This document shows, piece after piece, positions 10,936 through 52,396 of a stretch of DNA of 64,000 nucleotides. The stretch covers positions 38,874,001 through 38,938,000 of the forward strand of contig NC_134482.1 in assembly GCF_964194025.1 (NCBI RefSeq), read 5' to 3'. Under the pieces are notes generated by a model that worked only from the letters and a program-made list of their open reading frames with translations, was not told the DNA's origin and ran no database searches. Source of the stretch: Convolutriloba macropyga. Taxonomy: Eukaryota. Positions within the stretch are counted from its first letter, which is position 1, and each line of letters opens with the position of its first letter. The translations under genes were made by a program, and so were the position numbers.

Positions 10936-10939
10936 CATT

Positions 10940-15240: not shown

Positions 15241-15242
15241 GA

Positions 15243-20541: not shown

Positions 20542-20579
20542 CTTTGAGTATTTTTAACAGACAAGCAATTATTGACGAT

Positions 20580-20730
20580 CTACCCTAGACGAACTCCGAC
20601 GCTTATCTTGCAAGATCTTGCAAGATTCTTGCAAATGACACTTATCTTGCAAGATGCAAGATCCGGACGCCTATATTGCAAGAATCTTACAAGATCTTGC
20701 AAGATAGACGTCGAAAAATCTTAAAGAAAA
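20580..20730. mobile_element. MITE-like fragment built of TCTTGCAAGA palindromes; related patches near 36290-36350, 38160-38270 and 62260-62330
   Basis: Clustered TCTTGCAAGA palindromes; termini not resolved. Confidence 0.45.
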
Positions 20731-21451
20731 AATTGCAATTTTAAAGACCGATTAACTCAAAAATCATGTTCTCTTATGAGTTATCTTAAGACCACTCTTC
20801 AATCTTGGAGAAAAATATACTCTTATAATTTATGCTGTTTACATACTTGTCTTTGAGGTATCCATTGAAATAAAGTTCAATTTAAATTTGTAGAATGTCA
20901 ATCAGATTGAAATTTTATAAACACATCTCAAAACATATTTATGTAGACAGAACAAAAATTGGGAAAATTAATTCTGTAAAACTGAAATTTAAACAAAGCG
21001 TTAACAAAGCATATAAAAACGAAGCATAAAAGATTAATATAATGAGAACCCTGGAAGCGATCCTGAGAAGGAATACATTCTTCATGTAAGATTCTTGCAA
21101 CATTATAAATCAATCCTCTGTTATTATCTAAAGGTTGATTTTGAATACATTTCGGAAGATTCCTGCATGATCTGAAGTGACAAAGTTTTTCATCTGGATT
21201 CCTCGACTACTTTCAGAAGTCATTTAAATAATTTTTAAATCACGCTATGCGAAACATAATAGAAACTGTCAGTAATGAATGTACTGAAACAAACTACAGA
21301 AGTACAATTTTTCGCTGTAACGTTTAAAAAACGTACTTGTACAGTTTTTCAAAAAAGAACAAAAAAAACTTGAAACAACCGAGCTAAACAAAAAACAGAC
21401 AATGTTGCTCAGCAAAGAAAATTGAAACAAAAATTGCTTGTCAAAATTTCC

Positions 21452-21820
21452 CTGGGCTAATACTGTTAGCCCGAATCCCATTTTTTCCTTCTTCAATTGT
21501 AATACACCGTGTGAACATATCCAAGGCTGCCTTGCTCATACAGTAGAACGCGTGATTCGGTACCGGGTTTGTAGCAAGAACCGAGGAATTGTTCACAATA
21601 TTCCCTTTAGTTAGTCTCAAATACGGAATGCAAAGTTTGGTCAATTTGACAGCCATTTTGAGATTGATGTCAAAAACTGTTTCGTAAGAATCCATCGAGG
21701 GGTCAACAAGAGGTGCCCCGACTGACATTCCAGCATTGTTGAACAAAATGTCGATTTGTCCAAATTTATCGATAGTTTCTTTCACTATGTTTTCACACAC
21801 ACCGTCTGCTTGTAGATCAC
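21452..21820 (-). CDS. SDR paralog B, exon 2
   Basis: ttctgttcag|GT GAT CTA: (G)DLQADGVCE...ILFNNAG...NNSS...YCMSK...RANSISP(G); catalytic N-S-Y-K motifs; 369 nt; followed by a GG donor. Confidence 0.92.
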
Positions 21821-22586
21821 CTGAACAGAAAAATTGGCAAACATCTATAAGACGATTTAAAAGAATTTTATTTCAATATCAAAATGAAATTGCGTTTCAA
21901 TTATAAATTGAAAAATAGAAATGTTGAGTATCATTTGTGAGATTTGATGTTTTTGAGGACAACTTTTGCTTGTTTCGGGAGGAATCAATTGGCAAATATG
22001 AGATAATAATCTTTTTGCCGACAATTTTTGACAGTAAAGCTTCAGAAAGTAAATTGGAGAATTTTAGTTTTTTTGTTTGTTTAAAGGTTAATGAAACTGA
22101 ATTTTAAAAATTTTTGCCCCTTGCTAGATAGACATAGATCTAGACTTACTATAAAAATCTTAAAATCTGAAGAAAAAGAAAGGTTGCAGTACACAAAACT
22201 TTTTAATGATGTGGTATGTCTTAGTTCTACAATATTCTGCATGCACTAAACTGAACATTTTGATGACAGAACATTTATTAAGCTGTAATAACAAAAACCA
22301 AAACAATTTGTAGATGCAGTAGTTCATAAACAAATAGATTTAAGTGAAAAAGTTGTCGTCAAAATAAATTTTTGTTGTTCAATAAAACGTGATGCTGACA
22401 CTTAAATTGTTTATCTCTGATTGGTCATAAAAAGTTTTTTAACAGCAAGCTCAAATTTTCTTAGAAAATGTCATAGTCAGTAGTGGTCGGTTCGTACATT
22501 GGTAGATAATTAAAGCATCCTAATGCATCTCTTAGTAATACGGGCCGTAATTTTGACTACCAGCAGAGATAAATAAATATAAGAAA

Positions 22587-22920
22587 CCCGGGTCCAGCTT
22601 TTGTCAAAAAATAATGTAAGATTAGCGGTGAATAGCGCTGAAAAAAACTTTCTTTTATCTTTTAGCGTTAAGTGCGGTGAAAGCTGTAAATCTTTTTAGC
22701 ATTTGGGATTTTTAGCGGTGAAAATTTTTTTTTCACCGCATTCTGTTGGTACCGATGAAATTTTTTTTTTCACCGCTTAAGCGGTGAAAAAAAATTCACC
22801 GCTTGAATATTTTTTTTTCTACGCATTCATCGCGTTGAGCGCAAATCTTACATTTTTACTCAAATTCACCGCAAATCTTACATCTTTTAGCGATTTTTAG
22901 CGGTGACACCTCGACCCGGG
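22587..22920. mobile_element. MITE-like element with short TIRs and internal CACCGC/GCGGTG inverted motifs
   Basis: Left end CCCGGGTCCAG, right end CTCGACCCGGG; many internal inverted GCGGTGAA/TTCACCGC motifs. Confidence 0.65.
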
Positions 22921-23829
22921 AAAAAACTATTACTGTTAGCTGGGTCCCTTATTTTTTTGTTATACTTACCTGCAAAAAGGCTATTGTAATTTTGTATTGT
23001 AAAGATGCTAATAACGTTAAATCAGGCGGTTGCTCGAGCAATGTATGTTTTGAAAGGTTCAACAGAACGTCAGTGTTGACTAATTTTTCCTTTGTACATT
23101 TTGAACCAATCAGAAAAAGGCAAAATATTTGGAAGTTACACTTTTTTAATTGCAGAAGGTTATGAAGTCAAAAATATGTGGGTTGATGAAATGGACGCAT
23201 TCATTTCTGATTTTGAGAAATTTAATTGTATGTGTTCTAACACAAGTTGTTCAAAAGAAAATAAAAATTATTTAATCGAATTATTACGAATTGTCGGAGC
23301 ATTCAATTGGCCTGAATCATTAAATGAGTAGCACATACTTATTCTTGCCCCACTCTTGCTTTTGAGATTCCTGCTATGCAATAGCACAAAACTCTTTTGT
23401 GGTTTTATAAAAATTTGATTTACTGGAGCACACAAAATAATTTCATCTGTTTTCGATTGATGTTACTCACAAAAATCAGATTTCAATTATTGCATGAAAT
23501 TTTTCCTGTCAAAAACAGTTTATTTTTCAAATAAATTATTATTTGTATTGTTCGATATATTAATTAAGGGCAATTCCTAAGGTTTCTTGAAATTCTTTCA
23601 AATTTAACCTGTTATTATTTTTGTGTTTCAATTTAATGAAATAAGTAGCAATTTAGAATTGCAGAAAAAAATGATTTGAAAATAATGTGGGAAAAAATGT
23701 TCTTGATATGATGCTTCTTGAACAGATGCGCAGCGTCAAACCATCATTTGCAATGAAAAAAAAACTAACATACGGAAGAGCTTTTCTTTCTAGAATTTTT
23801 ACACAATTTTTGTTTCAAAAATTGCATAA

Positions 23830-25544
23830 TGTCATTGTTTCGAAGAAACAGCAGGAAACTTAGAAGTCTTCTCTGATTAAGTTTAAAAAACGAAAGCAGA
23901 ATTTACATGACGAACTCAGATGTTCTGTCGACAAAAGTTGGCCACAAAACTATAAACTTGAATCTTATTCTAATTTTGTCATGAATCTATCATGATGTTA
24001 TTGACCAATTGATCAGGAGTCAGAAGTCAAACTTTTTGAGTTTTGGAAATAAGATTTCAACCTCCAACTGATAAACTTGATTTTACCAAGATCATGAATA
24101 ACTCACATGAAAAGTAGCGAAAATGTGAAAACAGGTCGTGGACTCGTAACTAAAATCTTTTCACTTGTCAATAATGTAAAATATTGTTAGCTAATCTAAA
24201 TTTTTTCTGTATTTTTTCGGATAGATAAATACGAGCTAATTTTTTTCTGGTTCATTTTCATTTCAAAAGTGAACTTATTGAATTTTTTGACAATGATGTC
24301 CAGACCACCAACAGATACAGAAATTTTGGATCTAGGGCTTGCAGAACCAACTACAGCGTGGATTATGAGTTTTGTTACGAAATGTTGACCAGAGAAGAAA
24401 GAGGACAGGATCAAAACCGATGGTTTTACAGTGGACCTACAGTTAACCAATCTCGTTTTTTTTTATGTGCGGGCAAGATGCAATTGTTAAAATTAGGAGC
24501 CTAATGAGCCCTGGGAATCTGACAGACACTCCGATTAAAGAAATCAAATTGGCGAAGCAAAATTATGATTTTCCTAAAGAGATAATAGTAGGGGCAGAAA
24601 AGGTTAGTTTCTGTTCATATTAGAAGGTGTAGGAAAATGAGACGTTGATTTGCTAGCACGTTTTAGAGAATAAATACGCTATTGTGACTGCGAAAGTTTC
24701 AACAAAATGGTCAACCATATTGCGGGGCGCTGAAGCTAAACTTAGACTAATATAGGGTTTTAAAGCAAAAGCAGTAATATGGATTGGTGGAATGATTGAG
24801 AGCTTGCAGTTCAGATGTCAAGAAACGGCCTTTGGAAAAGTTTCACCAGAAACTAAGCGCATTATAGTGCAAAAACAAATTGTATACAGCCTCAAAACGA
24901 CCACTCTAAAACCAAACTAAAACTTTATAGCTATTAAAACCAACAAAATGATAGCTAAGTGTTGAGTTATGCCACATTCTAGTAGACATTGCCAGTGCTA
25001 ATTAAAAAATGCACCAACTGTGCAAAGCAGGGACACTTTCATTTTTTTCGAAAAGCAAACAAAATTTGACTGCTATTAAAAGCAACAATAAAGGCATTAG
25101 GTTTTTAGGCAAGCCACATTCTAGTAGACATTGTCCAGTGCTAATTAAAAAATGCAATAACTGTTAAAAGGAGGGATACTTCTTAATAATGTGTGGAAGC
25201 AAAACCCAGCCATATTCAGGTAAGCATAAAAAGAAAAAAGCGGTTGCGAAGAAAGAAATCTATTCCTCTTTTCAAGCTTTTCTAATAGAAGCGGAGATGA
25301 GAAGATAATTTACTAGATAACAAATCTTTAACATGTCTGGGCCATGGGAATATATTACAAGAAGTTTCTGAAGATTAAAATACTGCAGGCAGACTTAGGT
25401 GCGGATAGCAAAGTGATTTCATTTACAATGTGGACTGTGCTTAGAAGACTCTTGTTATATGGTGAGATAGGACAACCCAAATTTTGTGATGCTTATCAAT
25501 TAACGCTTCTGTGATCACTTATTTGTGACGTCGATTGGAAAGGA

Positions 25545-25601
<57 letters not shown>

Positions 25602-28533
25602 TCACACTCATAAACAACTAGCACTTGTGCAGTCTGAGACAGAATTTGGATTGTTTAGAAGAGACCTTTTACCTAACCACAGTGTAAACAGGGTCACCAA
25701 ACGTTTGCCTGTTTTGAAGGGTTACAAAGCCCATGTGAAGCTGAAACCAGAATCAGAACCAATGTTCTACAAAGCCATAATAATACCTTTAAGACAAGGT
25801 TAGAGAGAAGCTGGAGAAGTTGGTGAAGAACAGAGAATCCTTGATCCGGTATAGCCAAGAAGAGTCACTAATTCATCTTCAGTGGTGTGGTAGAGAAGCG
25901 TGAGTGAACAGCTGAGACTTTGTGTGGATTTGAAAGTGCATATCAAAGGCAAAGTCATGGATGATTGTTATCCAAAATCAGACATGGATACGATCTTCCA
26001 CAATGTCCATGCGGCCTCATGGTTCGGCAAAATCAATCTCTCAAATGCCAACTATCAAATTGACGACGGCAAAAGACATAGGCACAATCAACAAACATTT
26101 GGGACTGTTCAATATGCGCCGACTACATCAGGGATCAAAAAATTTTTCAATCTTCCAGAGTTGCATCGAATCAACACTCAAAGGAATGAAAAATGTTGTG
26201 ATTTTTCATGACCATGTGTTGGTCTATTGAAATACCAGATTGGCAATGGAATGCTTCAAGAGAAAAAGTTACTTCGTGAGGAAAACATTACTATTACTGA
26301 GAAAAAAACTAACTCAAAAACAGTCGATAGCATTAATTTTTTTGGACACTTCATTTCAATAGAAGGAATAGCACCAGATACCAATCAGGTTTAAGAAATT
26401 TTTTTAAAAAAATAGTGTAGTAGCACTAACTAACAACAAACAACTCAACCCGTTTGTTGTGCTAGCAAATTTTTACGGAAGAATGATTCCTATTTTTGCA
26501 ACATCTATGCTGCCCTAAAATGACATGAGAAATAGTAATTTCTCATGGAACAAATACACCGAAAAGCTTTCAATGTCAAAGAAATGAATTATGTACTAAC
26601 ACATTTGTACAGCCATAAGTTTTGCCAAAAGATGCAACAGCTACTACTGACGCCTCTGAAAAGCCATTGGTGGGGTTCTTTCAAAAGAAGGACATGCAGT
26701 TACATTTGTATCAAAAAATTTGACGCTGGTGCAAAACTACTAAAAAATAAAACGAGAAGCACTGCCGATTGTCTTCACGGTCACAAGATTAAAGCAGTTC
26801 CTTCTTGGAAGACAATTTACCCCACAGACGGACCAAAAAACCACTCAACTATCTTTTTGCACCAGACGTTGAGATCCAGAAGACAGCATCAGCTAGAATC
26901 ACAACTTGGGAAATTGCACTATATGGGTTTCGACTTTGAGTTGACGTACACGCCAGGAGAGCAAATACCCTACGCAGATGCATTGAGAAAAATGGGTTTA
27001 GATGATGTCGAATCCGACAACAATCGAGTGTGCTTCGCAATCAATCTTATCGACCAAAACTACGACACTTGAATTTGGCAAAAATTGCATGAGTCGCATC
27101 CTGGGAAAAATGAAAACATGGCCTTAGTCAAAATAATAGCACGCTGGCCTGGCATAAACCAAGACGTTCAAACATTTTTTTAAGAAATTCCCTAATTGTC
27201 AAGTGAACGGGCTTAGCCTGGGAAAAACAGTCTCCGCGTGGCCAAAAGCCAAAGTTTAGCAAGAGCTTCAAATGGACTCGGGTTATGTTAAGGTCCAAAG
27301 CAATATCCATGTAATTGTTCATTTGGGTTCTGACTGGATGGTAGCTTTCCCCCGCGTGAAGTAGAACAACAAAAACAGTCAAAACATATCTTACTTAAAT
27401 TTTTGCAAGATTCCGAATACCCAGAATTTTAGTATCTCATAATGGCTCTAAAGTTCTAAGGGGCGATCTTTAAAAAAGAACAAATCATTGGGAATTAAGA
27501 AAATGGAGTCATCCGTCTATCTTCTAAGAGCTAATGGACAGTGAAGCGGGCACTTCAAGCGTGGAGTTCTAATCGTGCCTTTTTAAATGGAGCATTCCCG
27601 CATAAGGGCATTGATGACACATTGCAACACTTCAAAAGCAAAGGGCAAATTTCCAGTTGAACTTTTATTGGAACGCACAGTGAGACAACCAGCAGTTACC
27701 GAATTTGACTTCTGCTAAACCATTCTATTCAAAGCCAATGAAAAAAGAGGCAGAGAATTCCCGGTGCCTTCAACAATAGAGAGGGCTAGAACACCTCTTT
27801 CATACAACCGAAAAACTCAATTGGGACTATTCGAGTGAGCAAAAATCAAATTCCGAAACTAAACGAAGACAATGTGAAACCAGTGAGGAAGACCATAGCT
27901 CAATCAGAACCACAAGTTCTGAACACACATGTGAGACCTTCATATCAAGCCAAGCGTCTGCAGCCACATCAACTGCAGAGCAATCTCAATCCTAATCATC
28001 AGAGCTTTTACGAGCATCAATAGGAATTAGAAAACAACCCTACAGATTTGGAACGCCTCTACCCAAAAATCTGGCTTAAAAAAGAGGGAGGACGTGATGG
28101 TTTTGGAGAAATATCAAGAAACTTTATTGTTGTTTCGATAAATATTCGCCAGTAAACTAAATTTGAATACTATTCTAACTTTGTCTTGGCGCTATCATTG
28201 CCTTATTGGCCCATTAATCACGTGTCGGAAGTAAAAATTCTTTGAGCTATGGCAATTTGATTTCAAACTCCAACTGATGAACTCAATTTTACCAACATTA
28301 TGAAGGATTCTCATGAATATTACCGACAATAGAACATAGGGTCCGTGACTCGGAACTGAAATCTTTTCGCATGGTAATCATGTAAAATATTTTTTGCTAA
28401 TTTAAATATCCTCTGTTTATTTTTGTATAGATAATTACTATAAATAAGAGCTAATTTTTGTATATTTTCAAATCCCAGTTTAATTTAAATTTGAACGTAT
28501 TGAACTGTTGAACCGTGTTATCGACCACGACAC
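23830..28533 (+). mobile_element. Decayed full-length Ty3/Gypsy LTR retrotransposon inside SDR-B intron 1
   Basis: Diverged LTR pair ~23830-24312 and 28095-28533, with a PPT (AAAAAGAGGGAGGACG) before the 3' LTR TG. Gag remnants include CPVLIKKCTNCAKQGHF zinc-knuckle repeats. RT remnants: LRLCVDL...YP...FGKINLSNANYQI and GLF..RL..G..IFQ, with YxDD decayed to FHDH. RNase H remnants TTDAS and FDFELTYTPG..IPYADAL; integrase remnants LHESHPG and WPGINQDV. Many stops and frameshifts. Confidence 0.88.
25547..25598. repeat. (CA)n microsatellite (duplicated at ~30983-31042)
   Basis: Direct read. Confidence 0.95.
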
Positions 28534-29884
28534 ATGAAGTCGAAAAAAGACTTTATACTCGAGTGTCATCATCTGGAGAAAGCAACTCAATGTTGGTGTC
28601 AAGAAAACACTGTTTCACTTTTTCTTCAGTCAAATGGTGCATCAAAAATTAGCAAGCTCATTTACCTTTTCTGTAAAGTCATCCAACTTAAATGGACTCC
28701 AATTTAATCATTTTCATGGTTAAATTGTTGCTCCTTTCACTCATTCTGTTTTTTTCCATTTAGTCAGCAAAGCTTATTACAATTAAAGAATTTGAATTGT
28801 TTTGTCGCGCTGTGTTTTTTTAAGTTCTGTGTACACATTTTCATGATTTTTGAAGTCAAATTGGAGTAGTAATTTTGGTCACGCCGAAACACGAAATGGA
28901 GCAAAAAGGCGAGTGGTTTTGCGGCGTGAAATTGTTTGCTCTAATTTTAAAATAGAGTGACAAAACGGTGTTTGAACAACAATTCGCTTTGTCGCTAGTG
29001 GTTTTTTTGTTCACATGCGGCTATTTCACTTTGATTTTTACTGTTTTTTTAAATTTTTTTTTGATTGGATATTTTTTCTAATTGGTTTTCCCACTCCATT
29101 CATAGTTCATTCGAGACCTAGTTTTTGTTCGAACTTAATTTTGTTTTCGCGCTAGCGGTTTTTTGTTCCCATACGGCATATTGACCTTATTTTTTGGTTT
29201 TGTTTTCTTTTTTATCTGTTTTGATTAGAAATGGTTTTTCCAATTCACTCATAGTCCGTTCTAAGTTTAGTTGTTTGTTTATTCTGTTAAAATTCTTTGA
29301 ATTGTACTTCGGCACTTGTCCTGCTATGATTTTATGTTTCTGCTGAAATTTTGGATAGCCAAGATAGACCAGTACTAAATTTTTCCATTCAATATCTTGA
29401 ACCCAAAGCTCATGCTCAAAAAGTTAAATTTATTTTTTTAGTTAAGTATTAATTTCTGGAAAAGTAATTGTTTAATTTCTGACATGTTGTTCATCTCCTT
29501 TCACATTTAATTTTTCAATTGAATATGTGATTATATCTTGTATTTGTGATGTATTTGGCCTGTTTTTAAAACAAAAACCAAAAGTTTCATGGTATACCTT
29601 TAGCCAGTTTTTGGGTACGTTTTTGGAAAAATTATAAGAGTTTGGGATAATGGGGACACTTGACAAAATTTGGTATATCATAGCAAGATCATGTTACCCG
29701 CACCTAACGCTTAGCTAATATCTGTACTGATTCAGAACAATTTCAGAGAAATTTTGATTTTCAGTACAGATTCAGAACAATATCAGAATAGTTTCTGCAT
29801 CGATTCTGAAACCTTTCTGGTTCAGAGCAAAATTCAGAATCAGTGTTCTCTGCATTTCCTTTGAATCAGTGTTCTCTGCATTTC

Positions 29885-30155
29885 CTTGTGTTAGAACACA
29901 TACAATTAAATTTCTTAAAATCAGACATGAATGCGTCCGTTTCATCAACCCGCATATTTTTGACTTCATAACCTTCTGCAATTAAAAAAGTGTAACTTCC
30001 AAATATTTTGCTTTTATCTGATTGGTTCAAAATGTACAAGGGAAAAATTAGTCAACATTGACGTTCTGTTGAATCTTTCAAAACATACATTGCTCGAGCA
30101 GCCACCTGATTTAACGTTATTAGCATCTTTACCATACAAAATTACAATAGCTTTT
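29885..30155 (-). repeat. Inverted copy of ~22975-23246 at the duplication junction
   Basis: CTTGTGTTAGAACACA...CAAAATTACAATAG is the reverse complement of CTATTGTAATTTTG...TGTGTTCTAACACAAG. Confidence 0.9.
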
Positions 30156-30174
30156 TTATAATGCAAGAAGAAGT

Positions 30175-31006
30175 TGTACACAGCCTAAAAACGACCACTC
30201 GAAAACCAAACTAAAACTTTATAGCTATTAAAACCAACAATATGATAGCTAGGTGTTGAGTTATGCCATATTCTAGAGGACCGTGTCCAGCGCTAAGTAA
30301 AAAAGGCAACAACTGTGCAAAGGAGGGACAATTTCATTTTCTTCAAAAACCAAACAAAATTTGACTGCTATTAAAAGCAACAATAAAAGCATTAGGTTTC
30401 AGGCATGCCACATTCTAGTAGACATTGTCCAGTGCTAATTAAAAAAATGCACCAACTGTGCAAAGCAGGGACACTTTCATTTTTTCGAAAACCAAACAAA
30501 ATTTGATTGCTATTAAAAGCAACAATAAAGGCATTAGGTTTTTAGGCAAGCCATATTCTAGTAGACATTGTCCAGTGCTAATTAAAAAATGCACTAACTG
30601 TTAAAAGGAGGGATACTTTTTAATAATGCTTGAAGCAAATCCCAGCCATATTCAGGTAAACATAAAAAGAAAAAAGCTGTTGCGAAGAAAGAAAACCATT
30701 CCTCTTTTCAAGCTTTTCTAATAGGAGCGAAGATGAGAAGATAATTTACTAGATAACAAATCTTTAACATGTCTTGGCCATTGGAATATTTTACGAGAAA
30801 TTTATGAAGATTAAAATAATGCAGGCGGACTCAGGTGCAGATAGCAAAGTGATTTCATTTACAATGTGGACTGTGCTTAGAAGACTCTTGTTATAAGTTA
30901 ATATAGGACAACCCAAATTTTATGATGCTTATCAATTAAAGCTTCTGTGATCACTTACTTGTGACGTCGAGTGGAAAGGAAGCACACCCACACACACACA
31001 CACACA

Positions 31007-31045
<39 letters not shown>

Positions 31046-36085: not shown

Positions 36086-36592
36086 CAATTTTCCTTGGAG
36101 TCAAATTTATCCAATAGGGAAATTCACTTGTTCTGATAAGCAGCTGAAATTCTTGTGAAGGTTGCGGAAACAGATGAAAATATCTGACAATGTTCTACAA
36201 ATACTGAACTCAAATTGCCCTATTGAGGAACTTTTTGAGATCAAATTAGTCAATTCAATGCTGACCCTAGTAACGATGGAATTGAATATTTGTAAGAAAG
36301 CATCTTGCAAGATTATGAACTTGCAAGAAAGAAGCTTGCAAGATTATGAATTCACTTGGAAACGAAAATGAAACGAGAACCGAAAGACAAAAATTCTTAC
36401 AGTTTGAGATACCTCTACAAGGAGTTATGGGCATGTCTTTTTTCATGAAATCTGTTTGTTGACGTCATAGTAAACAAAATAAAACGATGATATATTTAGC
36501 AATAGTAGTTCGCCAGAGAACCAACAACCAAACAAATTTTGTTCTGAACTGCATCAGATAAGAGCTCGGCTATTAAGAAAATGAAAACTAAC

Positions 36593-36788
36593 CTTGCACC
36601 AATAAAACTTCAGCATCTTTGTTCACTGCTAGACAATCTTGCTTTGTCTTTTCCAAAGCTTCTGCATTACGACCACTGAGAGACAGTTTTGTGATTCCCT
36701 TTTCCACAAATTTCACAGCCGTGTCCTGTCCTATCCCAGAACTAGCTCCAGTTATAATCACCACTTTCTCATCAGAGAACAGTTTCAT
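36593..36788 (-). CDS. SDR paralog B, exon 1
   Basis: MKLFSDEKVVIITGASSGIG...LLVQ G|GTTAGT; 196 nt; phase 1 matches exon 2 at 21820 across a 14.8 kb intron. Confidence 0.88.
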
Positions 36789-40347: not shown

Positions 40348-40568
40348 TCACTGAATGACATTTCTGCACGCTAGACCTCCATCTTGTAAAACTGAAGAAC
40401 CGCTTAAGAAATTCGCTTCATCGGATGCTAAGAATACAACCAAATTAGCCACATCTTTCCCAGATCCGTTTCTGCCCAGTGGAGTTTGTTTCCTAAGATT
40501 ATCCCAGTACGGTTCCAAGAATTCCTTGGGAACACCAATGCTCTGCGCGAAATTTGTCTCAATTATCC
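40348..40568 (-). CDS. SDR paralog C, exon 3; whole gene 44532-40348
   Basis: taaag|GG ATA ATT GAG: (G)IIETNF...TPLGR...FLASDEANFLSG...DGG...stop; 221 nt. Confidence 0.9.
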
Positions 40569-41128
40569 CTTTAAATGGTTCAGAACAGGTAAGCAATCAT
40601 TGAATTGTACAGTGTAGGATTTTTATTTAATTTCCTCCCCATGAGAAAGAACGTTCGCATAATTTGAGTTGCGCTGTCAATTATAGTTGGCAACAAAAAT
40701 GAGGCACGTAATCTTAATAAGGTGAAAATTAATTGTCAAGTTTGTTTGTTTAATTGTTAACATTGTTTTACGAAGAAGAAGACATACTGACAACTTTTAT
40801 AACGCGTAAAAGAATTTAGAATTGACAAGCATTTCAAAAATTGGCTAAAAATACCCAATTTTGTTGTAAAAAGTGGAGGCAAGTTATGGTCATCTCAACT
40901 CCTCAACTCGAGGTCCTCGTTCAAAATTGCTTCTATTAGGTCTTTCAAAAACGCACGGAAGAGAGGCGAGGTGCGTGGAAAATTCCATGGAAAATGATCA
41001 ACTGCTAAGTGACCAGATGTTTGTCTAAATCTGATTTTCAGCGAGCCGCATATGATTTTAAGTAAACCTGAAGACGGTCGGTTTTGAAAACCTTATTGAA
41101 TATTCAATGATTGCATGTCAAAACTTCC

Positions 41129-41497
41129 CAGGGCTGATACTATTCGCCCGAATCCCATTTTTGCCCTCCTCAACAGCAATGCACCGCGTGAACATATCGA
41201 GAGCCGCCTTGCTCATAGAATAAAACGAGTGATTCGGCACCGGGTGGGTAGCGAGAATTGAGGAATTGTTCACAATATTTCCTTTGGTTAGTCTCAAATA
41301 GGGTATACAGAGTTTGGTTAACTTGACCGCCACTTTGAGGTTGATGTCAAAAACAGGTTCGTAAGAATCCATTGATGGGTCGCAAAGTGGTACGCCTACT
41401 GACATCCCAGCATTGTTGAATAAAATATCAATTTGACCAAAATTTTCGATAGTCTCTTTCACTAACTTTTCACACACGCCGTCGGTTCGTAGATCAC
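41129..41497 (-). CDS. SDR paralog C, exon 2
   Basis: ggtttag|GT GAT CTA: DLRTDG...NNAG...NNSS...YSMSK...SISP(G); 369 nt; followed by the GG donor GGAAGT. Confidence 0.92.
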
Positions 41498-44333
41498 CTA
41501 AACCGAAATAAAGTTTTATATCCGAAGATAGGTTTTTTCTTAGGATTTTGATTTGGTCACGAATTGTATTTTTATACAAAAATCAAATCTGATTCGAATG
41601 AAGCAAAGATGGTCAAAGATGGCCTCAAACGAGGTCATAGATATTGTGCAATTTTTTGACCGGGGATCCTTCTGAACTATGTAAAGCAATCTGTTGAAAT
41701 CAGTTGAAAATTGGGCTCCATTTCTGTTTTTTTTTTCAATTGTCAGCTTAATGCGCTGAATAGCAATGATAAACTATGGTATCAAAAAACTAGGTACATC
41801 TAGAAAATTTTTCAAAAGCTTCACAAACTTTAAAAAAAAATACAATGTTTTGGATTCAGATCATCAATCTAGTAAGGAGTCATTAGGTTTCAGCTTTTTC
41901 TGAAAATTTTTCTAAAAACTGCGTGTCTCTGTGTAACTGTTGCTCCAAACTTGTTCATAATTTTTCAGATTCTGATCGGGACTATTTATTGACAATTCTT
42001 GTACCTCCAGCACCTTTTTTTGAACATGTTTGGCTTGGATCGTCGAAATGCAGAGCAGCCTCATTTTGAAAAAGAAGTCTTAAAGGTGCATTTTTTGTAA
42101 TTTTTTGTCTTTAAGCGAAAAAGAAGACTTAATTTTTTGCGAAAAAGAAGACTTAAAGGTGCATTTTCTGTGTTTGAAAGTCTGCCAAACAGTTTCCGCC
42201 CCTCTGATTGAATTGCACCCAAAAGTATAGATGATTGCTTGTCCGAACTAGATTTTGTTGTCTGGCCTGTTACTTTTTTGTTATCCTTTGTATGCTTGCT
42301 GTGTACAAGATCTTGATTCTGAGCTGCGCTGCTTTTGTTAGTTCAGCGCCGACGACAGTAAAACAACCACGTTTTCTGTTAAAAACCGAGAAAAAGAGAA
42401 TGAAATCCAGGTTAAAATTTCAACATTTCACGCCTTTTTTTCATGCCTAAGCGCAGATTAAAATTTTCGAGCAAAAGTTACGCTTGAAGAACCAAACTTG
42501 TACGTTGCTTTTTAATACTGAACTGAATTTTGAAAGAAAAGGTCTCTGAAATTACGTTTTCAGCGCTTTCAATTCTTTTCTCACGTTGGGTTCAATCCTT
42601 TTTTTAGCCCTTTTCAAGCTGATTTTTTAGCCTGTTTTCACGACACACGCTAGAAAACGTGAATCTGTTTTCATTATCCCTTTTGATATCGTTTCAAAGG
42701 AAAAGGACTGATATGCGCAAACAGATGATGCAGTAAAAAATTGTAAGGAATTGTAATCATTACTCTATTGCGCAATGAGCAAAATTATTTTTACATTTTG
42801 TCTTGTTTGCGAATTTTCTGCAAAATTTTAATTAAGAGATGTTTATGAGCTGAATTTATTGTAAAGCAATATAACGCTGATCATTTGCATATTTTGGTTT
42901 TTAAAGCTCGTGTCTGGCAGTAATTGGAACTTTTTAAGAGCGCAATCTGATATTTAATTCATCAGATTTTCAGAGAAAGTGTAACATAGTTTTGATTACG
43001 TGAGCAAAAAACAGCTCTTCACTAGTAAAAGGACTTCAAAAATGGCAAATAAAGACTTCAAAAGGAATTCAAATGCTGTTGACTTTCTAGCTAGGACAAT
43101 TGTCGGAAATAAAGTCCATTGTTCAATTTTGCTCAGCAAAGAAGTAAAAACGCTAACTGTGGTTATTCTTAGACAATATTCTTGTCTTCTCCAAAACCAA
43201 TTTTTTTCAATTATGTATTAATCTGGTTATATTCCGTCTTTTTGTTGATACCTAAAAAATACATAGGCTTCCATTTCTTTTAGTTTTAGTCAATCGTATG
43301 AGTAACAGAATTCAGCATTTTTTCTTCCTTCTTTAAGGAAAATAACACCAAAGAAATTTTTACGCTTCATATAACTATGATTTTATTTTTGTTTCAGCAT
43401 GCGAATGCTGTTTCTCCTTTGTGTTACTATTTGTTATATTATGGCAAGTAAATAAAATTTTGTACACTCGTTATAATTAACATTTTTCGTCGCATAATGT
43501 ATGTTGCTCTTTCCTTAGCATCTTAAAAGAATTCTTTTTTAAAATAAAAAATAGTAACAAATACATACAAAGCATTTTTGCTGTTTATCAATCCGCAGCA
43601 TTTCGGAAAACTAATTGGGTTTTGCTTGCTTAAAACTCCGGAAAATTGAATATATCATTTTTTTCTTAAAGTTTCATTGACATCAATTCACTCTTTTACT
43701 TAATTCTCTTTTAAAGCGCCTGTTAGTAAAGTCACATATTTTAACGGTTTCATATAAAGAAGATTTAATCAGACTGCGGATTTCTAAGAATTTTTTTTCT
43801 TCTTCTAAGGGATAATGTTTCAAATATGTAATTATCTTTTCAATTCCTTGCATTGAATCATTTGGTTCTCAGCAAACATTTTTTTGTAAGTCTTGTAGAA
43901 AACTTTTTTTGTCAAATATTTAATATTGAGTGTTTTAATTTGTCTTTCTATGCTCCAACGGTTACCCGTAGATGAAATAGGATCATAACTGTTAATTTTC
44001 AGTGGTTTATTTTTCAGCGGATAGCGTAGATAACGTTAAGGTTAAAGTGCAGAGTTTGCAACAAAACTTGGTATTGACTAGTTCAGATCGTGCCTTCAAA
44101 TTGTGATTTTTTTTCAAAATCAACAAATAAAAAGCTAAATTCTCTACTAGGCTACTACTTAAAGGTTCGTGCGTTGAAAAGTTTTTAAAACCTAAATGTC
44201 TCAATTTTTTAAAGCGTTTTACCAATGCTTCTGAGGTATGGAATTTTGATCCCTTCAGTCTTTGGCTTTGCTCAAATAAAAAAGAACGTTTGGTTACAAA
44301 GTCAAAAGTCAAAAAATTTTACGTTTATCAAAC

Positions 44334-44532
44334 CTTGTACCAGCAACACGTCAGCATCTTTGTTAACTGCTAGGCAGTCCTGTTTTGTTTTCTCCAACCC
44401 TTCAGCATTGCGGCCATTGAGAGATAAATTTGTGATTCCCTTTTCCACAAACTTCACAGCCGTCTCTTGTCCTATTCCAGAACTAGCTCCGGTTATAAGG
44501 ACAACTTTCTCGTTCGAGAATAAGTTCATCAT
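44334..44532 (-). CDS. SDR paralog C, exon 1
   Basis: MMNLFSNEKVVLITGASSGIG...LLVQ G|GTTTGA. Confidence 0.9.
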
Positions 44533-47169
44533 TTTGCTTCGTAGAAGGAATGAAGGGTGATCAAAAGATAAAACTATATGGATAGATCGACCCTTTAAGA
44601 AATTTTACAATTGAATTAGAGTAAAATGATTCAATTGATTCGGTTTGTTCGACTGATTTTGTTGTAGAATTATTTTTACGTATATAAAGCAATAAATAGT
44701 TCTTACACACAGATTTAATTACAAAAGGTCTTGGTAGTTCAACAAAACGCAATGCTGCTTGTTCAAAAAGAGAGTTTAAACGAGTTTAACTTACGCGGTA
44801 CGCCTCCAGATAAACTAATAAGAATTTACGTATACTAAAAATGGTAAAAGTAACAAATTTTGATCTCATCTTCGAATGAAAGTGGTGCGAAAATATCAGC
44901 AATTAGATGTGTTCGCATATTTTTGGTACAAAGACGTAGAATTATTTAGAAGTTTTCTGTTTCAAATAAGCAAATGAAAAAAAAAGATAACGTTTCACTT
45001 TTTTATTATCTTTAAACATTCTGAGTAAGGAGTTTTTCAGAAAAAGAAAAAACGACTATGATTAAATTATCTGCTGAAACACATTGGTCTTTGTTTTGAA
45101 TTTCCTCAAAGAATAAAAGAATTTTACTACCTTTTTTAGTTAAAACATTTCAAAAAATTTAATTTAAGCATTAATTATCAAAAATGTTATCCGTTTTCCA
45201 AATTTTTTACCGCTTTTTTCATAGACAACGGCAAGTTTGATTTAAAAAATATCTTTATTGAACGTGGTGTGAAGATTTATAGTGTTTTCATTTTAATTTG
45301 TTGTTTTGTTTTTTATTTCATTTTGTAGTAAATATTTATAACTGCAATGAAAACGAAAATAAATTATTCTTTTTGCTAGCAAAGCTCGTCGCAATTGTCG
45401 TCTGCTCTAATGTCATTCGCTATTACTCATCCTATTTATGACATTCTTTGGGGAGCAGATCATGTGTGACAAAGCAAAAGTTCATGCTTAGATTGCTATT
45501 AAAATGATTCAATAAATTATTTTAGGAAGTAGAAGAGAGCATTTTGTTAGAAAAAAGCATGAAATGGTTTTTGAAAAAACCACCAATTTGATACGATGAA
45601 AAATAATGGGTCAAGTGCGCTTCACGACATGTGTGACAGGAGAAAAAAATTGGAAAACAATAGTTATCTCAATATGCTGATTATATCGAGTTGCTTTTGT
45701 GGGTTTTTTCGCGTATTTTTGCAGGACAACCGAAAATCAGTGTTGATTGACTCTTTGGCTTTAAGTTTTTTTCTATTTTTCATTTATTGTCATTACCACA
45801 CTTTATGGCCTCTGGAAAATTCAAAATTTTCCCTTTTTGTGTTGTACGGTAGTTTTGGACATTTTATAATTCAACAGGAATGGTGTGGTTTGTAATAATT
45901 AACAAAAATAACCATCACGCCTAAATTGTTTCAATTGGAATGCCTCTCACTTTTATTCTTTTTAAATAAGTTAGAAGAATATGAAATGTTGAATTTTAGA
46001 CATATCTAACCCACTAACAATCTAATCATGAAAGGAGCTCTTTTGGTGAAAATTAGTTTTTGTAAGCTCTCAGTCAGGCAACACATGCAAATTTGAAACC
46101 GATTTCCAAATATTCTCGAAAGATTTTCTGATGATTTCAACTAAGCTAGATATCAGGTCTTTAGCTGTCAATTAAACATAATTGACACGAAGTATATAAA
46201 CAAAAAAAAATAAATCATGTTTTTTCATCACTTCTGCGCGTGTAAATTGCTACCCAATCTTCGCAAAAACTTCAAAGTCTAAATCCTGGCCTTCGCCAGC
46301 TGAAACTTACAAATCGAAATGCCAGTCTTGAATAAGTTTCCAAAACATTGAGGTCGGGAGAACATGGATGCCATCACTGATTGACAACCTCCTAATGGGT
46401 TCACACAGATTGATGTGTTCAACTTTTTAAATCTATAATTCAAAAGATTTTAAAAATTTGTTTTCTAATGGGCTAAAATTTATCTCTCGAGTAGCTAGAT
46501 CATCTGAAAACACCTCAAAAATATGATTGATATCATTGGGTGAAAGTAAGCGAAATGTATTATTTGGTATCAGTTTTCAAGCCCAGAAGTGACATCAAGC
46601 CAAAAAAAAACAGAAAGAAATTTAATTTGTCCATTTTGATTTAAGAAATTAACTTTTGTAAGTTTTAACAAAGTCTTACCCATGACTAGGCAGACTAGCA
46701 ACATTTGTCTTCAGATTTTTCCAATACTGAAAAGGAAAAATTTGCTTTTAGAGCGGTCTAATATTAATATAGGTTTAGCTTAAGGTTTTGTGGTTATTTT
46801 TCGGAATTCGCTTTATCCAAAATTAACGTTTGAAACGAGATGACAAAGTTATATCAAAAACTTTATAAGTAAACAGGTTTTTCCTTTCATTTCAATTTCT
46901 GTTTTCCGTCGTCATTCAAAAATTCATTTTTTACAATTAGAAAAGTTTTTCTGCTGGCTTGATTTCAATTCGCCACCTTTTTCGAATCCTAATGCAGAGT
47001 TAAAATGTTGATATCTGCCGAATTGATTTAACGATGTTTTTAGTATTTTATAATTTCATATAGTTAAAAAAAGTGAAAACGTAGTGAGTCTTGCCTCAAT
47101 TGGGTGAAATAAAATTCCGTTTTTCACATAGGTTATATCAGTCACCTTGCCTCCCCTCCCACCTACACA

Positions 47170-47193
47170 ACAACATACACATACACACATACG

Positions 47194-47262
<69 letters not shown>
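47170..47262. repeat. Compound (CA)n(TA)n microsatellite
   Basis: Direct read. Confidence 0.95.
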
Positions 47263-48121
47263 ATACACTCGCACTCACGTGCACACACAGGTTTCCCGTT
47301 CACAATTTCGTCAATATCGTACCTGTCTTGGATCGGATCTTAAATCTCCATCCACTGGCGGGAATATAAACATGCTCGCATGCTGAAAATCGTGGAAAAT
47401 CGTGACATAAGTTTTGGAAAAAGTTTACAAAAATTATTTTTCCACAATTTCTGAGGGGGTTTTTCACTTTCTGCAAAAGCCACAAATCGTGAACAACCGT
47501 GACGAAACATTGTCATATTTTTCCACGACTTTGCCAAATGGGCTCAACAAGGTTATTTGAACGTTTTGCTGCATAATGCAAGTTAAGCCATTGTTTGAAA
47601 AAAAAACATATTTGTCAATGAAGAAGATGACATCTAAATAGTCAAGAAATGTTTCCCAGTCTCTGCAAGACATACTGACTATTAATTTTTCTTAAAAAAT
47701 GGCTCCTTGAGCATCATTTTCAATTTACTTCAGAAGAAAATCGATAGATGCCATTTTGAAGTTCTCAAATCTCTAAAATCTTTTAAGTATTTTGAACTGC
47801 TGATTGTACTCACTTTTGAAAAAAAAAACATCCCATTTCTCTCGCTATTTGTTTGACAAATTTCTTCGAAGAATTTCCTTCTCAATCAGTGTGAATTAAT
47901 TAGTTTTTAGTCAAATGAACACCAGCAAAGGCTATATATTGTTCCATTAGGAATAAAATCACTGCATCTATAAACCACTCAACACAATCGAGAACACGTT
48001 AGAATATATCAAATAATATAAAAGTAGTTAGGCCAAAAAACTTCTAGTCTTACTTCACCGCAGTAAACGAAATTGGGATGTAAATGCTTTGTTTTCATTG
48101 CCAATTGTGAGTAACAAATAG

Positions 48122-48127
48122 TTTATT
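48122..48127 (-). promoter_or_regulatory. Candidate polyadenylation signal AATAAA for SDR-D
   Basis: About 120 nt downstream of the stop at 48245; AT-rich background makes a chance match possible. Confidence 0.35.
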
Positions 48128-48244
48128 CAAACATAGTAATGAAAACAAGATTTTGTTCACAGGGGGGAGGGGGGAGGGGGAGGATACAGTTCCATTACCA
48201 GTCAGGTTCTATTTTGCGAAACTTTTCAATCAATCAACAAGTTT

Positions 48245-48465
48245 TCACTGAAGGAAATTTCTGCATGCAAGTCCGCCATCCAACAAAACCAAACTTCCGT
48301 TCAGGAATTCCGCCTCGTCCGATGCGATGAAAGCGACCAACTTAGCCACATCTTGACAGGTTGCGATTCTTCCAAGGGGGGTGTCCTTACCAACTTTATC
48401 ACAGTACCATTCCATGAGTTCTTTGGATAGTCCGTGTTTCTCGCCAAATGGTGTGTGGACCAATC
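48245..48465 (-). CDS. SDR paralog D, last exon (exon 4); whole gene 62641-48245
   Basis: acgcag|GA TTG GTC: (G)LVHTPFG...TPLGRIA...FIASDEAEFLNG...DGG...stop; 221 nt. Confidence 0.9.
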
Positions 48466-51400
48466 CTGCGTTGTTTTCAGAATTCAATTCGAACCTTTTC
48501 TTTAGAAGTTTACGGATGGAAATGTTTTTTTTAATCAGGCTGAAGATAATTAGAAGAAGCAAACTAGCTTTTGATGTTGTCCTGGATATAACGATAAGTT
48601 AATTTTAGTCTAATTGCATGTCTGATCAGTACTGACTAAGTACAAATATCAGCAGTACTGATTAATGATCAAAATGGGACACGTTTAAAGATTTTTTACA
48701 AAAAAAAAATTGGAATTCACTCCCGAAATTTTTGCTTAAATTATTTTTGAGAAGTCCAACTGACTTGATAGCCGAGTTCCTGAGACGACCATCATAAAGT
48801 TTTTTTTTAAAAAACTGTACGTATAAAAAGCATTGACAACGTCTCGGGAAAATGACTTCTTTAAAATTAATCATCCATTTGTATCTGTTTGTAAGTAAAA
48901 TCATGATAAACAGAAGTAGTTATATTAATCGGTTTCTGCGCTTTTTTTGGTCACCCATTTTTTTTCCGCACAATTCAAAATAGTATTTGCAGTATGCATG
49001 GTATTTGCAGTTGTGCTGTTTGTATGGTCTTGACAGCTAGCTCAGATCACTTAACAACTTGATCAATTAGTGAATTAATAAACAAATTTTAAATTACTTC
49101 TGAATCAAATAAGCTTCACTTCGTGTTAAATATTTTTCAAACAAACTTTTTCAGAATTTCAAAGTTTTAAATTGCTCTGGTCCGTTCAATAAAAACCAAA
49201 TCAGATAAATGAGCAAATTTCATGATAAACAACTAGTAGTTTTGTTTATAAGGCGAAGAAGTAGATGTGTTTAAAGATAGGAACGCAAACAGCAGTTTTA
49301 TCCATTTACAAGAAAATATGTATCTAAAATATTTCAATTTTTTAATCAAGCTACGCAGGCAGCGTTTCAGAAAACAGTTTTGTTTATGGCCCTAGGAACC
49401 GTGCAAAATTTGAAGTGAAGTTTTGTGGTATTAAAATAGTCTGTGTGGTTGACTTTTTGAACTCAAGGAGACCTGATTCATATATGACAAATATGAAAAA
49501 TTGTACCTCATGTTTCTGTGTTTTTAGTTGCCCATCTTTTTCAGCATTCTCGTTCACATGCTTTTGCTCACACATTTGCCTATTTAGAATAATTCAGTTT
49601 ATTTTTAGTTTTGAGAACACTTACATTCCAAAACAAAATATAATTTTTTATTTTTTCAAGAATTAAAATATTGGTTTTTACTAATTCATTATTAAATAGA
49701 GGCAAAAAATTTGGTATTGAGTTTTGTATAAAAAATTAAACGTTATGTTAGATTTAGGAGATTTCATTCAATAAAGTTAAAAGTTAAATATTAAAATGTC
49801 GAGTAAAATTTAAAATTCATCCTTGAGGACCCTAGTTTTTAACTTGAACCCTTGTTCGCGGAGGGTTATTTGTTCAACATGGCATGACTTCAATTTTGGA
49901 AAACTGAAATGAACGTACTGTTGTTAAGTAAACGTTTAAAAACGTATAGTTCTAACGCGTTCTTTTCTTTGAAATTTGCGACAAAATTTGAATTTACTTA
50001 ACTTTTCTGTTGGGTTTCAAAATAGGTAATATATAAAAATTTACACGGCGGGATTAATATCAGCTGTTTCATTGTTGACCTGGTTCAAACGCATGGATAC
50101 TTTTTGGTAGTCTCCATATCTTCTTAGAAACCTCCTTTGCAAGTTTTTCTTTTTGAACAGTACGACGACTATTTAATTTCATAAATCTACAGAAAATACA
50201 TTTCCAGAAAAAAATCTATTCCTCTTTTCTTGAGGGTTAGTTATAAATGTAGTAGACGAAATTGACAACAATTCGGCAAAACCTCTGGAAATCAACGGAG
50301 TCTCCTGATTTGTGAATGAGCGCAAACGGAAAAATTCTAAGGGGTTGACTCAACGCGAGAAGTCCTCGTTCGCATTAAAATTTTTACAGCAGAAGCAGAA
50401 AAACCCGACTGTCAAACTCCGAAAAAACTACCGTCTGAAATAAAAGACTGGGTATTTGGTATGTATTGTTGTCCAAGTAATGGAAAATAATATCCACCAT
50501 AAAGATTTTAAAAAGCGGATTATTCAAGCTAACATTTGAATTCAAATTTGCTTTCATTAATGCGCAAAAAGGGGTCAAACAAATCTGAAAGCGCAACCGA
50601 GATCCGTGGTCCTCTAATTTTTTGTTGACAGGTTGCGTCAAAGTTATTCAATCAAATTTCAGTTTTTTGTAGTCGTAGAGTAAACTCTGCTGACAGATTA
50701 CAAAAAAGCAGAATGACATTACATAGTAAAAGCTGTGGGATAAAATTCACTGAGCAGTGAGATCGTACAATTCTTAAAGATTAGGGATAAGATGATTGAA
50801 TCACTACGAAGTCCAAAACCAAAACGGTTCATCACCGCAAAATTTAAAAAGTTCAAGTTTCAATTTTATTTAAATTTGTCCGTGTTTTTTAAAGCTTTTA
50901 CGCACAAAAACTGAGTTCACGATATTTGGTAAGAGCAACAGAAAAAACCTCAATGAACAGATAAATATACTTTCCCTTTTCATAGACAACAAGCTTGAAG
51001 TAAAATTTTGAGGGGCTCGCATTGACAGCAATTTGAGGACGTGTCAGGGAAAGTTAATCATGCCCTACAAAATAGCCCATAGAATACAAACAATTTAAGC
51101 TATTAAAAAATCTATTCCACAGAAACTATTGAGACTCGTCTAAAACGCCCTGTTATTAGGTCTTTTCCACAACTCAGCAGTTATCATTGACGCATTTGAA
51201 TAAATTTACATCCTTATTGGATCCTTGGAAAAACCGTTAAACTGAGAATTACTGGCAGCATAGACTTAAAATTGAACTTAATAAAGACACAAATGCAGTC
51301 GGAAAATGCTCCACGTAAAACTTCTTTGGAAACAAAATATTAGATTAAGTTCAGAATTCAAAAATGCTTACGATCTGCTTGTACACCGTCATCTGAAGGT

Positions 51401-51895
51401 CCATTAATCACTTGGAAACTTTATGAGTCGAAAAGAAAAAGTTGTGTTAGAACCTAAAATTTGTTTTCAACTGAAAAACAAATTTCAATACTAGATTCCT
51501 GACATTAGAATCAAACAAGAAATTTCCCCAAACTATAGAGAAAGACATTCTTCTTTTCAGTTTTTAAACTAACTCCTTGTTTGTGGAAGGTTAGTTGTTC
51601 TACATGGCGTGACTCTCAATTTGAGAAAACGAATTAGACTTAATAATGTCGGGCTGACGTATGAAAACGTATTTTTTAAAGCGGCTTTTTAAATACGCGA
51701 ATAAATTTGAACTTCAATCCAAACGGAAAAATTCAACTCGTTTTTTTATATACGCGAATAAATTTGAAATTCAATCCAAAATCTGTAATGCCTAAAATAT
51801 GCCAAAATTTTTCCAATAATCATGACTAAACTCCACTTCGTTTTTCAAAGACGATATGTTAGAGAAACATCACTGAGTCCTGAAAACAATCATCC

Positions 51896-52048: not shown

Positions 52049-52050
52049 CT

Positions 52051-52390: not shown

Positions 52391-52396
52391 TATTTC

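Follow-up and report, generated by a model that had tools for sequence, protein, structure and literature searches.

In the acoel Convolutriloba macropyga, eight paralogs of a tandem SDR (dehydrogenase) gene family carry an intron in one and the same codon, and this intron begins with GG or GA. The near-universal intron start is GT. We analysed a window of 64,000 nucleotides (contig NC_134482.1, assembly GCF_964194025.1, positions 38,874,001 to 38,938,000), which contains the paralogs B, C, and D on the minus strand. Each of them presents a frame of 786 nt (261 aa) with zero internal stops once the introns are removed. This frame requires the removal of 21451-20542 in B (910 nt), 41128-40569 in C (560 nt), and 51895-48466 in D (3430 nt). 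The initial annotation had proposed these coordinates, lengths, and junction letters, together with stop-free exons, and all were reproduced; the frame of D also needs the exact removal of a D-specific insertion of 348 nt. We consider it probable, on balance, that these segments are real introns derived from one intron that preceded the duplications, and that the major spliceosome removes them, aided by a stem that a transposon probably left.

The exons are well defined. In B, exon 1 (36593-36788) is followed by a canonical intron 1 with the donor G|GTTAGT (36592-21821). Exon 2 (21452-21820) covers positions 51-173 of the Pfam adh_short_C2 profile. Residues 20-65 of exon 3 (20321-20541, stop included) cover positions 190-235. 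Paralog C has exon 1 at 44334-44529, with a canonical G|GTTTGA donor, exon 2 at 41129-41497, and exon 3 at 40348-40568. The last two match the profile, exon 3 from position 176. In D, exon 1 (62446-62641) ends at a canonical G|GTTTGT donor, and exon 2 consists of two parts, 52397-52612 and 51896-52048. The second part and exon 3 (48245-48465) match Pfam. Exon 2 measures 369 nt in B and C, and exon 3 measures 221 nt in the three genes. Paralog A is represented in the window by exon 1 (15876-16071, minus strand), identical to residues 1-65 of the NCBI model P0015. Its exons 2-3 lie beyond the window start, and the gene spans about 36 kb.

The three introns share the borders G|GG...AG|G. Their donors are CCA G|GGAAAT in B, CCT G|GGAAGT in C, and CCA G|GGATGA in D. 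The junction follows the first base of the Gly codon in the SDR 'PG' motif, the phase-1 position proposed at first. On the Pfam profile, exon 2 ends at position 173 and exon 3 resumes at 175/176, so the split Gly is position 174. It lies exactly between the exons; therefore, no micro-exon is missing. The chains of PDB homologues are continuous across this join. Likewise, a transcript contig of a relative (Logan ERR1712226, 985 nt, 56% identical) reads an uninterrupted NPGLIETS. Between the introns of B and C, an alignment is possible for the first 24 nt and the last ~36 nt only. Both genes share an in-frame stop four codons past the donor. The B intron region also carries a very high-copy repeat at about 20474-20741.

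Because of a direct repeat of 2-4 nt at the junctions, 4-5 registers in B, C, and D would yield an identical mRNA. GT-AG, GC-AG, and AT-AC are absent among all the equivalent registers listed for these genes. The AG acceptor in every copy appears only in the register of the initial annotation. The region from -17 to -3 is 33-60% pyrimidine in the non-canonical introns, whereas intron 1 of these genes reaches 73-80%; this agrees with the acceptor difference noticed before. A canonical U2-type GT-AG or GC-AG intron was rejected, because no such register exists and no pyrimidine-rich tract precedes the AG. U12-type (minor) introns are marked by a /RTATCCTT 5' site and a TCCTTAAC-like branch site at 10-15 nt from the 3' end. 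This type was rejected as well. The 5' ends read GGAAAT, GGAAGT, GGATGA, GAAAAA, and similar, and by inspection the branch motif is missing from the last 45 nt.

Five further paralogs (A, P0011, P0012, P0013, and P0014) have an intron at the same codon, outside the window. Three of these introns are GG-AG and two are GA-AG; all likewise have no GT, GC, or AT-AC register. The eight paralogs together present six GG-AG and two GA-AG introns. The donor G|G-R-A and the terminal AG are conserved in 8/8 copies. The exon side is (C)AG in seven of the eight, with the exception of C (CTG|GGA). All eight go back to a single ancestral intron and therefore represent one origin, not eight.

All eight introns also present a stem of 9-15 bp between their ends. 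The 5' arm lies within +7 to +27, and the 3' arm occupies a segment 6-37 nt upstream of the 3' end. Among the copies, the first paired position varies from +7 to +15, and the last one from 6 to 25 nt ahead of the 3' end. In B, the 5' arm (+10 to +24; 21428-21442) pairs with 20560-20574 (19-33 nt before the 3' end) over 15 positions, with one mismatch. In C, the arms are 41102-41114 (+15 to +27) and 40593-40605 (25-37 nt before the end), and the MFE and centroid folds alike have the intron closed by the stem. In D, they are 51878-51889 (+7 to +18) and 48471-48482 (6-17 nt before the end). The D stem retains the TCAG/CTGA core of the family, with different outer pairs.

The end-to-end duplex energy is -18 to -21 kcal/mol in all eight introns (z -2.4 to -4.8). 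For intron 1 of seven of these genes, it is -5 to -10 kcal/mol (z +0.2 to +1.6; Mann-Whitney p = 1.6e-4, 8 vs 7). No such stem is present in the canonical GT-AG intron 1 of these genes. In a common register, the stem has two-sided changes at eight columns, plus G.U pairs. Such pairs are formed in RNA and not in DNA. Pairing covers 79.5% of positions between an arm and its own partner, 69% when the partner is taken from another paralog, and 28-46% when the arms are slid. The observed pairing is reached by 48 of 5040 partner permutations. The covariation signal, drawn from related sequences, is of moderate strength (about 1% by permutation). The conserved, covarying stem is the feature that most sharply separates this intron class from intron 1.

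The initial annotation had concluded that the genome has a second intron class with relaxed donors. Judged from sequence, in one gene family, a non-GT class beside GT-AG appears to stand. The eight paralogs, the selection on exon 3, the exact join on the profile, the model P0015, and the D insertion all point to it. The word 'relaxed' is incomplete, because the donor is G|G-R-A in every copy and is accompanied by the covarying stem.

The stem might also define the cuts by itself. In such a structure-guided excision, the intron would leave as a circle and no spliceosome would take part, as has been proposed for the euglenids. We know of no pathway of this kind in animals, and we consider it unlikely here. 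It would account for the pyrimidine-poor 3' region, and for the paired ends with short direct junction repeats, which recall the nonconventional introns of euglenids as outlined in PMC11282704 and PMC3935182. The 3' arm of D ends 5 nt from the AG and leaves almost no room for a branch site, which also fits this mechanism and counts against our preferred explanation. Nevertheless, the euglenid type is marked by variable non-canonical borders and a stem at a fixed short distance, and we found the opposite. The borders are constant (+1 G, +2 R, +3 A, and terminal AG in 8/8), and the exon side resembles a normal 5' site. The distance from the stem to the junction changes (+7 to +15 at the 5' end; 6 to 25 nt at the 3' end), which is unfit for a measuring mechanism. 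In these features, the acoel introns do not fit the euglenid type. Moreover, the non-canonical introns of Fritillaria are removed by the U2 spliceosome (10.1101/2025.08.15.670264).

Cryptic canonical sites, used instead of the GG or GA donor, would leave small deletions or insertions beside the PG motif. B and C offer in-frame GT (-12) and GC (-6) alternatives with the same acceptor, and four NCBI models (P0011-P0014) were built on GT or GC sites inside the intron, with intron-derived residues as padding. However, this explanation is quite improbable. No cryptic alternative is common to all paralogs, and D has neither the GT at -12 nor the GC at -6, in line with the earlier claim that no nearby GT/GC site is shared by the three genes. 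The alternatives of B and C delete the conserved S-I-S-P and change Gly to Arg, although B and C show three differences in the codons of N-S-I-S-P, every one of them synonymous. The 'coding' stretches that P0013 and P0014 take from the intron bear no relation to each other or to the family profile. In P0015 and all the homologues, PG is directly followed by x-x-x-T/P. In the model P0015 (paralog A, 261 aa), the GA-AG intron is taken out exactly at NPG|LIG, a join that is impossible from any GT, GC, or AT register.

The NCBI models disagree among themselves: beside the exact one stand a truncated one and four that rely on other sites. For the SDR cluster, the public models are visibly damaged in this way, by one truncation and by intron sequence as padding in four. 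An annotation of the C. macropyga genome that accepts only GT-AG would mispredict many proteins. The protein collection searched had no transcript-derived protein of these SDR genes.

The truncated model, P0001 (paralog C, 192 aa), reads through the donor and stops at ...SISPGKF. Together with the stop that B and C share beyond the donor, it could suggest that the genes end there or are pseudogenes, with exon 3 as a relic. This is very improbable. Exon 3 is open and in frame in the eight paralogs and corresponds to the C-terminal third of the SDR fold, a part that a complete domain requires. It is under purifying selection, with dN/dS values of 0.19-0.28, among them 0.28 (B vs C) and 0.19 (B vs D), at saturated dS (0.4 to >1.5 among paralogs). 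The allelic variants of B comprise 10 synonymous and 2 non-synonymous changes. Nine of the variants are in exon 2, all at third codon positions, and 8/9 are synonymous.

At the DNA level, we considered contigs from four public runs of whole-animal DNA. They agree with the assembly across the acceptor, so the junction is not an assembly error, and no variants at either junction are listed in the four runs. An excision from somatic DNA (programmed elimination), which would leave the element absent from the mRNA and whose layout of inverted plus short direct repeats is present, is hardly credible, because contigs span the intron borders at full depth, the intron depth equals the exon depth, and no joined, intron-less form was seen in these runs.

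The D-specific insertion (52049-52396, minus strand) interrupts exon 2 and is not present in B and C. Its inverted repeats are fully terminal, and a clear direct repeat of 8 bp, AGGAAATA, marks a target duplication. A copy with 80% identity lies at 54440-54723. The insertion can be removed as a GA-AG intron, a register with the same layout as the old intron, which speaks for the transposon model. Its sequence makes it a candidate for a separate, younger GA-AG intron. Inverted repeats at or near both ends, the mark of transposon-derived introns, are found in 8/8 copies of the old intron. Its junctions repeat only 2-4 nt (AGG, GGG, CAGG), possibly by coding constraint (coding GG). In a search of ~145 kb (the window and the sequences L001-L004, a weak test), the 70-nt ends of the eight introns had no matches other than themselves and close paralogs. 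Given the lack of a dispersed-repeat match in these sequences, and a short repeat explicable by coding GG, the origin of the stem as a remnant of DNA-transposon inverted repeats is weakly supported.

In the spliceosomal explanation that we prefer, the ancestral intron would have arisen before the tandem duplications of the SDR cluster. Its signals would be the sites (C)AG|G-R-A (5', with GG or GA for GT) and AG|G (3'), together with an RNA stem of 9-15 bp that would loop out the entire intron body and draw both splice sites together. The cutting, most likely by the major (U2-type) spliceosome, would occur at exactly these nucleotides. The match to U1/U6 at -3 to +1 and at +3/+4, plus the stem, might offset the missing U at +2. 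Finally, the stem may come from transposon inverted repeats and may have been kept since then by selection at the RNA level. A bolder version is conceivable, and we propose it tentatively. Acoels might have a second splicing code, in which a required stem just inside both ends stands in for the U at donor +2 and allows faithful G|GG or G|GA splicing. Compensatory evolution would have kept this stem long after the death of the transposon. If such a code is true, transposons that land in exons would be harmless at once.

To our knowledge, non-GT introns are very rare in most animals, with the larvacean tunicates and one copepod as known exceptions. The genome note and the other acoel literature searched do not mention unusual splicing. 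If RNA confirms these introns, an acoel would represent a further, independent animal lineage with a non-GT intron class.

The closest donors are the GA-AG and GG-AG introns of the copepod Eurytemora affinis and the larvacean Oikopleura dioica (Robertson 2017, cited in PMC7072748; Frey & Pucker 2020, PMC7072748). As far as that article describes them, they share with the acoel introns the G at +1, the purine at +2, the A at +3, the exon-side AG, the AG acceptor, and canonical GT-AG neighbours. In our family, (C)AG|GGA or (C)AG|GAA occurs in 7/8 copies and the AG acceptor in 8/8. However, the lineage differs, GG is commoner than GA (6 vs 2), and the acoel introns have a stem, whereas the relevant parts of PMC7072748 mention no conserved end stem.

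Fritillaria borealis has transposon-derived non-canonical introns (Henriet et al. 2019, summarised in PMC11282704; 10.1101/2025.08.15.670264). It is likewise an animal with inverted-repeat DNA elements in genes, which are taken out as introns with non-GT starts. According to these summaries, the need for the U2 spliceosome was demonstrated in Fritillaria; here it is presumed. In Fritillaria, about 95% of introns are non-canonical, and the inverted repeats form the borders themselves, mostly AG-AC or AG-AT. In contrast, the acoel introns have a standard 3' AG, a stem 7-15 nt inside the 5' site, and canonical introns as neighbours within each gene.

The introners of Amoebophrya and the euglenid nonconventional introns resemble ours in their paired ends, short direct junction repeats, and likely transposon origin, in the portions of PMC7789003, PMC11282704, and PMC3935182 that concern them. 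Nevertheless, these sources describe protists with highly variable borders, and the euglenid pathway yields circles. The acoel borders are fixed and spliceosomal-looking.

In yeast, zipper stems within the intron shorten the distance between splicing signals, and the RPS17B stem is needed for efficient splicing (10.1101/2022.07.22.501175). The stem of the putatively spliceosomal acoel intron would act in a similar way. However, the yeast stems connect the 5' site with the branch point of GT-AG introns, begin no closer than 10 nt to the 5' site, and show little conservation (10.1101/2022.07.22.501175). The acoel stem comes to within 5-24 nt of the 3' site, in an intron with a non-GT donor. None of the other systems clearly shows an old intron in which compensatory change has preserved the end-to-end stem over at least eight gene duplications. 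With a stem maintained in this way, the replacement of part of the splice-site code by RNA structure becomes directly testable with minigenes.

In the SDR dehydrogenase paralogs B, C and D, the intron that splits the glycine codon of the PG motif (the PG intron) begins with GG and ends with AG. It occupies positions 21451-20542 in B, 41128-40569 in C and 51895-48466 in D. The junction letters of the initial annotation match the sequence, and this observation is solid. The junctions carry short direct repeats, namely AGG in B, GGG in C and CAGG in D, which leave four or five equivalent registers for one mRNA. No register gives GT-AG, GC-AG or AT-AC in any of the three genes. An AG end is obtained in every copy only with G|GG...AG|G. 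A U12-type intron is ruled out by sequence.

The reading frame places the junction precisely. Joined to exon 1, the exons of each of the three genes make a stop-free frame of exactly 786 nt (261 aa). The Pfam profile adh_short_C2 follows exon 2 to position 173 and resumes in exon 3 at 175/176. Thus, the split glycine is position 174, and these coordinates rule out a missing micro-exon between exons 2 and 3. Solved SDR structures show no break at the matching position. The GT at -12 and the GC at -6 were considered as main donors in B and C. The initial annotation had argued against nearby GT/GC alternatives. These two sites are in frame, but they would cost S-I-S-P and change the glycine, and D has neither of them. 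In addition, B and C differ at three positions within the N-S-I-S-P codons, and all three changes are synonymous. We rejected both sites as main donors on these grounds.

All these genes lie on the minus strand. The first exons are located at 16071-15876 (A), 36788-36593 (B), 44529-44334 (C) and 62641-62446 (D), and all four terminate at a canonical phase-1 donor, CAA G|GT. Exons 2 and 3 are found at 21820-21452 and 20541-20321 in B, at 41497-41129 and 40568-40348 in C, and at 52612-51896 (interrupted) and 48465-48245 in D. The later exons of A are past the window start. Its intron 1 of about 34 kb (window 1-16071 plus locus L006, outside the window) houses the window's satellite array and masked N runs. 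The window is AT-rich (GC about 33%) and, repeats aside, has little further content. At 20474-20741, 22484-23000 and 19000-19133, the word depth of the DNA runs jumps from about 50 to 10,000-160,000. Therefore, these stretches belong to families of hundreds to thousands of copies. The high-copy stretch within the PG intron of B is made of palindromic CTTGCAAGAT units. A C-rich tract of CCCCCT type directly follows the stop codon of D (48165-48195, minus strand).

Exon 3 shows dN/dS values of 0.28 (B-C), 0.19 (B-D) and 0.20 (C-D), with dS from 0.4 to more than 1.5. The values for exons 1 and 2 are 0.04-0.15. Among the heterozygous coding variants of B in four public runs, 10 of 12 are synonymous. 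Exon 3 would not stay under such constraint in a gene that terminates at the read-through stop. The depth of the four runs is 40-60 and even across exons, introns and flanks. Heterozygous sites are present, and no spliced joint appears in the runs mapped over these regions. Taken together, these features mean that the four runs are DNA. A run search limited to RNA-Seq libraries gave no hits. No transcript-derived full-length protein of A, B, C or D was found; all matches to the 192-aa query model were NCBI models or genome ORFs.

Protein searches identify the organism as Convolutriloba macropyga, an acoel. Five additional paralogs of C. macropyga, at loci outside the window (L001-L004 and L006), are each interrupted by an intron at the identical codon. 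The borders are G|GG...AG in the genes of the NCBI protein models P0012, P0013 and P0014, and G|GA...AG in those of A (P0015) and P0011. The exons of the ENA contigs ERZ25071359, at first attributed to a relative, match the NCBI models of C. macropyga exactly, so the contigs represent the same species and provide paralogs only.

The NCBI models disagree at the PG intron. P0001 (192 aa), which is paralog C, reads through the GG donor and ends in ...SISPGKF, with the stop right after (PGKF*). P0011-P0014 are built on cryptic sites and carry 3-27 intron-derived residues, unconserved among paralogs; three models have 17-27 of them. In one model of the cluster, the donor is a GC lying 10 nt downstream, and three residues are gained. 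P0015 (261 aa) is the sole exact model among P0001 and P0011-P0015. It has the join NPG|LIG, which is impossible with any canonical register. The NCBI pipeline accepts non-canonical junctions where alignments support them. At the end of exon 1, the P0011 paralog (L004, about 5929) has a GC donor, AAAG|GCTTGC; the other paralogs have GT.

The two ends of the PG intron are predicted to form a stem. In each of the eight introns, the 5' arm starts between +7 and +15, and its pairing partner ends 6-25 nt short of the 3' end. We calculated duplex energies between the 40 nt at the start of each intron and the 45 nt at its end, with shuffles as the reference for the z scores. The eight non-canonical introns gave -18 to -21 kcal/mol (z -2.4 to -4.8). 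In contrast, seven of the genes gave -5 to -10 kcal/mol (z +0.2 to +1.6) for their canonical intron 1, with zero overlap between the two sets (Mann-Whitney p = 1.6e-4). The introns of B and C can be aligned solely at the first 24 nt and the last ~36 nt, at an exon dS of 0.4-1.0. Seven paralogs in a common register show pair-keeping changes on both sides in eight columns. At column 8, for example, A and P0012-P0014 have C-G, whereas B, C and P0011 have A-T. Several stem pairs are G.U, a pair that forms in RNA only. The 5' arm pairs at 79.5% of positions with its own 3' arm, at 69% with those of other paralogs and at 28-46% when slid. Only 48 of 5040 partner reassignments were as good as the observed one. 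The stem of D retains the TCAG/CTGA core, and its outer pairs differ. In C, both the minimum-energy fold and the centroid fold close the intron by the stem. The C intron as a whole is not more stable than shuffles (z -0.65), so the special feature is the terminal stem only. No Rfam matches were found in the window.

The initial annotation had proposed a second intron class with relaxed donors. At the level of sequence, a distinct class of putative GG/GA-AG introns is well supported, and the conserved predicted stem sharpens its definition. Unusual introns are not mentioned in the C. macropyga genome note (PMC13650328) or in the other acoel papers searched.

In a relative, a metatranscriptome contig contains an uninterrupted NPGLIETS. 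SDR homologues about 53% identical (L007 5001-5480; L008-L010 5001-5306, all in other assemblies; ERZ25878734 and ERZ25071366) have a canonical GT intron. In L007-L010 it is in the same phase, four codons downstream of the PG position, after PGFVDT, and the PG intron is absent. With their intron four codons away, the ERZ25878734 and ERZ25071366 homologues are uninformative on the PG intron as a cross-species test. The sister subfamily P0017, P0018 and P0019, on another chromosome or contigs, consists of uninterrupted single ORFs of 257-261 aa (49-55% identity to P0001). This suggests an intronless subfamily, in which case the PG intron would be specific to the tandem cluster.

D alone has a second interruption of 348 nt (52396-52049, minus strand). 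Its inverted repeats are terminal (11/12), its direct repeat AGGAAATA is 8 bp long, and it can be read in a GA-AG register. Its exact removal is required for the frame of D. A long C run lies within it (52345-52375, minus strand). A second copy, 80% identical, is located at 54440-54723, about 2 kb upstream of exon 2 of D, and is consistent with being part of a decayed local duplicate. In its layout, the young insertion matches the old PG intron. It supports a scenario where an inverted-repeat element inserts in an exon and is then treated as an intron. For the old PG intron we only infer a transposon origin, since its ends match no dispersed repeat (zero copies in ~145 kb searched) and its junction repeat is just 2-4 nt.

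We favour the major spliceosome as the cutting machinery that would remove the PG introns. The exon side agrees with a normal 5' site, as do positions +1, +3 and +4. The 3' end reads AG|G, and the borders do not vary. The main rival is a euglenid-like, non-spliceosomal excision. The even depth of the four DNA runs over intron, exons and flanks contradicts an excision of the element from the DNA. For the favoured major spliceosome, other systems offer comparisons. RNA-seq supports GA-AG introns with this sequence context in two animals, a copepod and a larvacean (PMC7072748). Fritillaria requires the U2 spliceosome for its non-canonical introns (10.1101/2025.08.15.670264). In yeast, stems are known that draw splicing signals together (10.1101/2022.07.22.501175).
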